Shown here one piece after another: positions 24,201 to 24,688 of a stretch of 64,000 bases of DNA. A program made the position numbers and the translations under genes. The notes beneath the pieces are model-generated. The model saw only the letters and a list, made by a program, of their open reading frames with translations. It searched no databases and was not told where the DNA came from. Source of the stretch: Styela clava (lineage: Eukaryota); the NCBI RefSeq assembly GCF_964204865.1, contig NC_135264.1, positions 11,780,001 to 11,844,000 of the forward strand. The letters run 5' to 3'. Position 1 is the stretch's first letter, and every line of letters begins with the position of its first letter.

Positions 24201-24688
24201 TGGAGGTTCTTTTTCAAGCACAATTTTACGTAACATGAATGCTGGTGGACGAGTGGGGGTATGTGGATCTATTTCTGGTTACAACGAAACTACTCCTGTA
24301 CTAGGTAAGTAAACCGTTTTCTGCAAAAATACATTATTCTCATAAGACTTTCTGGTTTATCCTTTACAAAATATATTGTTCAGCTCCCATTGTCCAACCT
24401 TCCATTGTGACAAGTGAACTGATGTTGAAAGGATTCCATTTTAGAACTTATGTAAATAAACATAAGGAAGCATATGAAGATCTGAAAAAATGGACTATTG
24501 AGGTAAGCTAGACATCCTGTGTAATTATAGTTCATCAGTGCAAATATTTATTGAATATCCATTTTATTCATTTTTAGGGAAAGATGAAATGTCACGAAAA
24601 AGTTACGAAAGGATTTGAAAACGTTCCCGATGCATTTATCGATATGCTGCGAGGAGGAAACGTTGGCAAAGCGGTTGTCAGGCTGTAA
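21221..24688 (+). CDS. PTGR1: PTGR1 copy 2 (prostaglandin reductase 1 / LTB4 12-dehydrogenase / alkenal-one oxidoreductase), 9 exons, intact
   Basis: Spliced frame [91 protein letters not shown]; all junctions GT-AG and in phase. Confidence 0.93.
22339..23090. mobile_element. Charlie-type hAT MITE in PTGR1 copy 2 intron 3 (right end eroded)
   Basis: CAGGGGTTGGCAACCT left TIR with GGCCCGC subterminal motifs; same insertion in copy 3. Confidence 0.6.

Follow-up and report, generated by a model that had tools for sequence, protein, structure and literature searches.

A hotspot of paralog divergence in exon 8 of a tandem array of PTGR1-like reductase genes

Introduction

Reductases of the LTD/PTGR1 group are used in eicosanoid breakdown, reactive-carbonyl detoxification, and biocatalysis. 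For the PTGR1 structure 2DM6, a docking study lists Arg56, Tyr262, and Tyr273 as indomethacin contacts and adds Val272 for other ligands (PMC6702150). The active-site tyrosine of the plant double-bond reductase MpPulR is Tyr257, and its description reports that the Y257A mutant has almost no activity, that the active-site perimeter includes F281 (conserved), V282 and V284 (both variable), and Y287, and that the F281A and V282A mutants keep 30%–70% activity (PMC13570306). Among invertebrates, a preprint on Spodoptera exigua presents SePGR, an enzyme annotated as a PG reductase and encoded by a single gene (bioRxiv 10.1101/2020.07.13.201608).

Our literature search returned no structural paper on PTGR1 residues 254–280 and none on tandem PTGR1-like arrays, an absence that is not proof that such work does not exist. 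Population genetics has a concept for islands of paralog divergence within gene families that are under concerted evolution. Here we describe a tandem array of PTGR1-like genes in which exons are homogenized or constrained, introns are diverged, and a short coding segment stands out from the remainder of the protein.

Results

A tandem array of five genes

Self-comparison of the window (the whole 64,000-nt stretch of DNA that was analyzed) revealed five tandem PTGR1-like genes on the + strand, comprising four intact nine-exon genes and one pseudogene. We refer to them as copies 1–5, in the order in which they occur:

12423..14757, + strand: copy 1, pseudogene; exon 8 at 14453-14571
21221..24688, + strand: copy 2 gene, from ATG to stop; nine coding exons, 330 codons plus stop
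32277..35468, + strand: copy 3 gene, intact, exon lengths equal to those of copy 2; exon 8 at 35173-35291
38120..43502, + strand: copy 4 gene, intact, exon lengths equal to those of copy 2; exon 8 at 43198-43316
47377..50967, + strand: copy 5 gene, intact, exon lengths equal to those of copy 2; exon 8 at 50653-50771

Canonical splice sites and nine identical exon lengths are found in copies 2, 3, 4, and 5; the coding exons of copy 2 measure 106, 46, 60, 168, 118, 159, 106, 119, and 111 nt, and all of its introns begin with GT and end with AG. Copy 1 carries an in-frame stop in exon 1, 8 extra nt in exon 6 that shift the frame, and a TAG as the last codon of exon 8, and no match to exons 2–4 was found in it. 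A scan of the 377-Mb assembly recovered only the five exon 8 copies of the array.

Two features of the surrounding DNA were also observed. The array is flanked by an inverted pair of 1.4-kb segments with 70% identity (17558-18959 and 54706-56107), which may be a mobile element present twice. Internally repeated DNA lies between copies 2 and 3 (28142-28666 and 29126-29823), with self-matches of 83%–89% at offsets of ∼60–300 nt.

Family assignment

Family searches were made exon by exon. Exon 6 of copy 2 scored 39.6 bits on the Pfam family ADH_zinc_N (PF00107), whose cut-off is 31.8, and a genome scan placed matches to this family on exon 6 of copies 2–5. The ADH_N_2 domain (PF16884) is spread over four exons. 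With the exons queried singly, its matches were weak: E=0.0036 (17.6 bits) for exon 1 and E=0.049 (14 bits) for exon 4, with a cut-off of 31 bits. A six-frame genome scan with PF16884 gave zero matches. When compared with the PDB, both exon 7 (2y05_A, E=4.4e-6) and exon 9 (1v3t_A, E=2.8e-10) had PTGR1/LTB4 12-hydroxydehydrogenase as their top match, ahead of PTGR2 and the plant double-bond reductases, and exon 4 was collinear with 2y05_A 71-123. The Pfam match of exon 6 and the structure matches of exons 4, 7, and 9 together identify the array genes as predicted PTGR1-like reductases, that is, zinc-free MDR enzymes of the LTD subfamily.

A PDB search with exon 8 by itself yielded nothing beyond spurious matches to pentatricopeptide repeats, and a six-sequence exon 8 profile returned a single chromo-domain match (E=1.1) and no PTGR1. 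A homolog search with the 40 aa of exon 8, in which a length filter admits no full-length proteins, yielded no candidate. Exon 4, searched against representative proteins, gave 16 weak matches, none with E<=1e-10 and none to a full-length relative; these were mainly to long repeat-like proteins or to fragments of 43–153 aa.

A distant single paralog with the same nine-exon order lies elsewhere in the genome (C16:5861036-5867202). Its identity to copy 2 is 44%–64% in exons 1, 2, 4–7, and 9 and only 31% in exon 8, which is therefore the least conserved exon at this depth too. This paralog has Met at the position equivalent to PTGR1 Tyr262. Donor copies for exon 8 outside the array were considered and rejected, because the genome holds only the five exon 8 copies described above and the distant paralog is just 31% identical there.

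Expression and splicing of copy 2

We examined contigs from three runs that are guessed to be RNA and come from three studies (X5, X9, and X10). Joints with GT..AG ends were present at all eight predicted introns of copy 2. A single X5 contig runs across both exon 7 and exon 8, with 0 other letters in the former and 2 in the latter, and X5 and X10 both contain the exon 8–9 joint; because of this contig and these joints, we conclude that copy 2 exon 8 is a real, spliced, and expressed exon. The likeness threshold for contigs was set at 90, at which contigs of other paralogs are also placed on the stretch and depth is uninformative for any one copy.

Several further observations concern copy 2. 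An X5 contig joins exon 1 straight to exon 9 (21324 to 24576, skipping 3251 nt, with GT..AG ends and a depth of 10), which could reflect exon skipping or a chimera of paralog transcripts created in assembly. Within intron 3, contig depth over 22340-22587 is 10–100 times that of the exons in four out of four runs, with numerous loose contig ends at 22486, 22515, and 22582; the intron probably harbors a repeat or mobile element of high copy number here. Contigs of organism B (run X13) are 90%–99% alike over parts of copy 2, and the pieces listed do not reach the variable part of exon 8.

A hotspot of amino-acid variation in exon 8

Exon 8 of copy 2 falls into a variable part and a constant part, which we denote E8a and E8b:

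24384-24502, + strand: copy 2 exon 8, 119 nt, with AG before and GT after; its first 2 bases belong to a split codon
24384..24466, + strand: E8a, the variable part of copy 2 exon 8; 2 split-codon bases plus 27 codons
24467..24502, + strand: E8b, the constant part of copy 2 exon 8; 12 codons

The 12 codons of E8b encode an identical protein segment in copies 2–5. An earlier note on this DNA had described exon 8 as hypervariable at the amino-acid level, and the observations behind that description held up well. The interval it gave, 24384-24502, is exactly copy 2 exon 8, and the four peptides it quoted for copies 2–5 were reproduced letter for letter. Its comparison of copies 2 and 4 was also counted correctly, both for the 27 codons of E8a (15 replaced and two silent-only codons) and for exon 7 (three replacement and four silent changes). 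At a named Tyr position it had read T/T/K/R in copies 2–5, which we confirmed; pseudogene copy 1 has S at this Tyr262-equivalent position.

Amino-acid-variable codons among the four intact copies make up 16/27 of E8a, compared with 40/298 elsewhere (Fisher 2.5e-7). The most variable 27-codon window of the whole gene begins at exon 8 codon 1, and the variability of E8a was reached in 0 out of 20000 column permutations (scan p=5e-5), which supports the hypervariability that had been claimed; the contrast with exon 7 is supported likewise. Three of the five columns with at least three amino acids lie in E8a (codons 6, 9, and 18). E8a is thus the strongest cluster of amino-acid variation in the gene and a real hotspot of paralog divergence. 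That the cluster could be a product of chance, of misplaced exon bounds, or of sequence that is not coding is scarcely credible, and these explanations are refuted by the scan permutation (p=5e-5), by the agreement of four copies in exon lengths and GT..AG sites, and by the exon 7–8 and 8–9 joints, which fall at the predicted bases in spliced contigs.

A second variable patch was noted in exon 3:

22071..22130, + strand: copy 2 exon 3, second variable patch; 7 of 19 codons vary among copies 2–5

Its counterparts in the other copies lie at 33120-33179, 38705-38764, and 48146-48205. The patch has one three-state column, at codon 6, and pairwise Nd/Sd values of up to 8/3. In PTGR1 numbering, the patch would presumably face the substrate-contact loop Ala53-Arg56.

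Position of E8a in the protein

We placed E8a relative to known structures through the exons on either side of it. Residues 1–34 of exon 7 align to 2y05_A 217-250 and residues 1–35 of exon 9 align to 293-327, leaving 41 residues between the two anchors here versus 42 in the human chain. Exon 7 also contains a landmark of the active site:

24280..24282, + strand: codon of the catalytic-Tyr equivalent in copy 2, exon 7 residue 28; each of the five copies has Tyr here

The aligned counterparts of this residue are 2j3h_A 260, 7eql_A 257, and 2y05_A index 244. We take the position of 2j3h_A 260 and 7eql_A 257 to be that of PTGR1 Tyr245. The active-site Tyr (PTGR1 Tyr245, AER Tyr260, and MpPulR Tyr257) is conserved in exon 7. 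A reading of the Tyr named in the earlier note as the catalytic Tyr was rejected, the Tyr245 equivalent being the Y of GYNE in exon 7.

Residues within exon 8 were mapped by ungapped offsets from the neighboring exons. With the quoted human string, such an offset has codon 9 of exon 8 face chain index 261, which we assume to be Tyr262. Counting back from exon 9 on 7eql_A, we infer that F281 of MpPulR corresponds to codon 17 of exon 8, an invariant Phe, and V282 to the hypervariable codon 18 (H/L/R). It is therefore plausible on this mapping that E8a corresponds to a pocket-lining segment. E8a is probably a strand-loop segment that borders the substrate pocket, at approximately residues 254–280 of PTGR1, and the equivalent segment probably includes Tyr262, Val271/272, and Tyr273 as well as the positions of MpPulR F281-Y287. 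Replacement changes are clustered in E8a, the putative ligand-contact segment, with E8a codons 9 and 18 at candidate pocket positions.

Substitution rates in E8a

At the nucleotide level, copies 2 and 4 differ in E8a by Nd=15 and Sd=5 (Nei–Gojobori); Sd is 5, compared with two silent-only codons, because three of the replaced codons carry a silent difference too. Over the six pairs of intact copies, NG86 estimates for E8a were 0.137–0.285 for dN, 0.270–0.673 for dS, and 0.33–0.80 for dN/dS. The corresponding ranges for the rest of the gene were 0.020–0.051, 0.150–0.234, and 0.09–0.24.

Maximum-likelihood (ML) estimates were obtained with our own GY94/F3x4 implementation, applied to the four intact copies on one fixed tree with conversion unmodeled, a setting of low power. 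With its own branch lengths, E8a had an omega of 0.56 (profile interval ∼0.26–1.3; p=0.17 against omega=1), higher than the 0.187 estimated for the rest of the gene (likelihood-ratio test p=0.005). Tree-wide dS was 0.85 in E8a versus 0.39 in the rest, and tree-wide dN was 0.47 versus 0.072, so that dN is raised 6.6-fold in E8a and dS 2.2-fold. With proportional trees, the omega of E8a was 1.14 when its dS was forced to the gene-wide value and 0.59 when it was given its own dS multiplier of 2.03 (multiplier p=0.062, borderline); when given its own dS, E8a still differed from the rest in omega (p=0.008). E8a evolves at an approximately neutral rate (omega ∼0.6, at most ∼1.1), and purifying selection on the remainder of the protein is clear (omega ∼0.19).

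Site-class models were fitted to the same four copies. The comparison of M1a with M2a gave 2dlnL=0, with or without a rate multiplier for E8a (r=3.75, p=2e-6), and lnL was lower at every point of a grid of 12 fixed omega2/p2 values with omega2>1. Recurrent positive selection in E8a is not demonstrated with these four sequences. The earlier note had seen in exon 8 a signature of diversifying selection and had itself named dN/dS above 1 as the measure to go by; dN/dS is below 1 in all six E8a pairs, and the ML omega is never significantly above 1. Of that interpretation, the hypervariability and the contrast with exon 7 stand, and the DIVERSIFYING selection does not. Counting replaced against silent-only codons had overstated the case, synonymous divergence being raised in E8a too and omega being no greater than 1.

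Introns, gene conversion, and private changes

In deep pairs, divergence is 2%–13% in exons and 20%–60% in introns. Exons are far less diverged than introns and are therefore constrained, homogenized, or both. One shared segment was conspicuous:

23801..23918, + strand: conversion-like tract common to copies 2 and 5, covering intron 5 and the first part of exon 6; 27 concordant polymorphic sites in a row

The permutation p-value of this tract is 0.0005 pairwise and 0.085 globally. Copies 2 and 5 differ at 2/81 sites of intron 5 and copies 2 and 3 at 19/81, and the introns on either side of the tract are 23%–28% diverged between copies 2 and 5. The tract looks like a recent gene conversion, and from the sequence patterns conversion is apparently pervasive in the array.

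We compared E8a with its flanking introns 7 and 8 across all five copies. Total divergence of E8a is no greater than that of these introns in eight out of 10 pairs and above it in two, namely copy 1 versus 2 (10/83 in E8a vs. 5/154 in the introns, p=0.010) and copy 2 versus 3 (14/83 vs. 6/145, p=0.0015). In these two pairs the divergence of E8a is three to four times that of its flanking introns, and relaxed constraint alone is therefore insufficient. The synonymous divergence of E8a is at the intron level, above the lower level of the other exons.

These data bear on the idea that age alone accounts for the hotspot, E8a having escaped homogenizing conversion and showing the older divergence of the array with no selective regime of its own. 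Such an account would fit the dS of E8a, which is about twice that of the rest and at the intron level, and conversion tracts can be shown in other parts of the genes. We nonetheless consider it quite improbable, given that the omega of E8a differs from that of the rest even with its own dS (p=0.008), that dN has risen 6.6-fold and dS just 2.2-fold, and that the neighboring 12 codons of exon 8 are protein-invariant.

The differences between copies 2 and 3 were then sorted by their distribution among the copies. At five of the 14 E8a differences, the states are common to copies 4 or 5 (the third base of codons 2, 23, and 25, the second base of codon 18, and the first base of codon 26). The other nine are each confined to a single copy, either 2 or 3, and comprise six replacement and three silent nucleotides. 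Private E8a changes number one in pseudogene copy 1, four in copy 2, and five in copy 3. Three partitions of the copies, {1,2,3|4,5}, {2,5|1,3,4}, and {2,4|1,3,5}, are mutually incompatible within the 83 nt of E8a, pointing to short conversion patches or repeated mutation. Adjacent double changes occur at codon 5 (copy 3), at codon 8 (copy 4), and at the boundary of codons 25 and 26; changes of this kind inflate selection tests. We also noted that the E8a of copy 1 is nearest to that of copy 3 (6/83 differences), yet the flanks of copy 1 are nearest to copy 2.

Selection confined to a small number of pocket residues (codons 6, 9, and 18 of exon 8 and perhaps codon 6 of exon 3) is another candidate explanation, which we treat as a tentative possibility. 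Constrained neighbors would then dilute the 27-codon mean, selection would reject conversion tracts that erase the differences, and four sequences could not detect the effect. Consistent with this are the omega of 1.14 under a gene-wide dS, an upper profile-likelihood limit of ∼1.3, the divergence of E8a above its flanking introns in pairs 1–2 and 2–3, the three- and four-state columns at putative ligand-contact positions, and the larger number of private E8a changes in the working copies 2 and 3 than in pseudogene copy 1. On the other side, M2a gains nothing over M1a (2dlnL=0), lnL falls at each omega2>1 that was tried, pairwise omega is <1 in six of six pairs, and the private changes of copies 2 and 3 (6 replacement:3 silent) correspond to an omega of only ∼0.5. 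Moreover, the sharing of five of the 14 copy 2–3 differences with copies 4 or 5 is what patch conversion predicts, and once the shared sites are removed, 9/83 remain against a background of 53/872.

Discussion

The reading we consider probable is that E8a is a hotspot of paralog divergence in an array of putative NADPH-dependent alkenal/enone reductases, at what is probably the edge of the substrate pocket, that it evolves at an approximately neutral rate, and that it is less homogenized than the remainder of the gene, with positive selection not demonstrated. Under this reading, constraint on the pocket-edge residues would be relaxed or would differ between copies, and E8a would be less affected by the conversion that maintains similarity among the copies in the other exons. 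Within E8a, short patches may also have been exchanged. It is plausible that the four putative enzymes differ in substrate range. If the paralogs do so through E8a, the array would offer a compact natural experiment on the specificity residues of LTD/PTGR1 enzymes.

A more elaborate scenario is that E8a, possibly in combination with the first part of exon 3, serves as a specificity cassette, in which selection keeps the pocket edges different against conversion and patches reshuffle motifs, giving a small combinatorial repertoire of enone/alkenal reductases. His18 together with Lys25-His26 is common to copies 2 and 5, against their flanks. We regard the scenario as rather unlikely. As it stands, the array shows the ordinary pattern of a young tandem enzyme family, with divergence at the pocket edge and conversion elsewhere.

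The closest described system is vertebrate PTGR1/LTB4 12-hydroxydehydrogenase (2Y05, 1ZSV, 1V3T, 2DM6, and 9D6Y), with which the array agrees in the best matches of exons 7 and 9, in the collinearity of exon 4, in a protein length of ∼330 residues, and in the retention of the Tyr245 equivalent. Unlike PTGR1, the array has four intact tandem paralogs plus a pseudogene and carries T/T/K/R at the Tyr262 equivalent, its exon 8 has diverged so far that sequence searches with it do not reach PTGR1, and the exon 7 and exon 9 anchors have one residue fewer between them. The plant LTD double-bond reductases (MpPulR, AtAER, and NtRed-1) belong to the same MDR subfamily by PDB matches, but they come from another kingdom and act on other substrates. 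By offset mapping, the conserved F281 and variable V282 described for MpPulR would parallel exon 8 codons 17 and 18 of the array (PMC13570306). The invertebrate SePGR is reported to be a single gene, in contrast to the tandem array found here. The array also resembles divergence islands within gene families under concerted evolution, in that its exons are homogenized and its introns diverged, and the short E8a stands at the intron level with conflicting site patterns.
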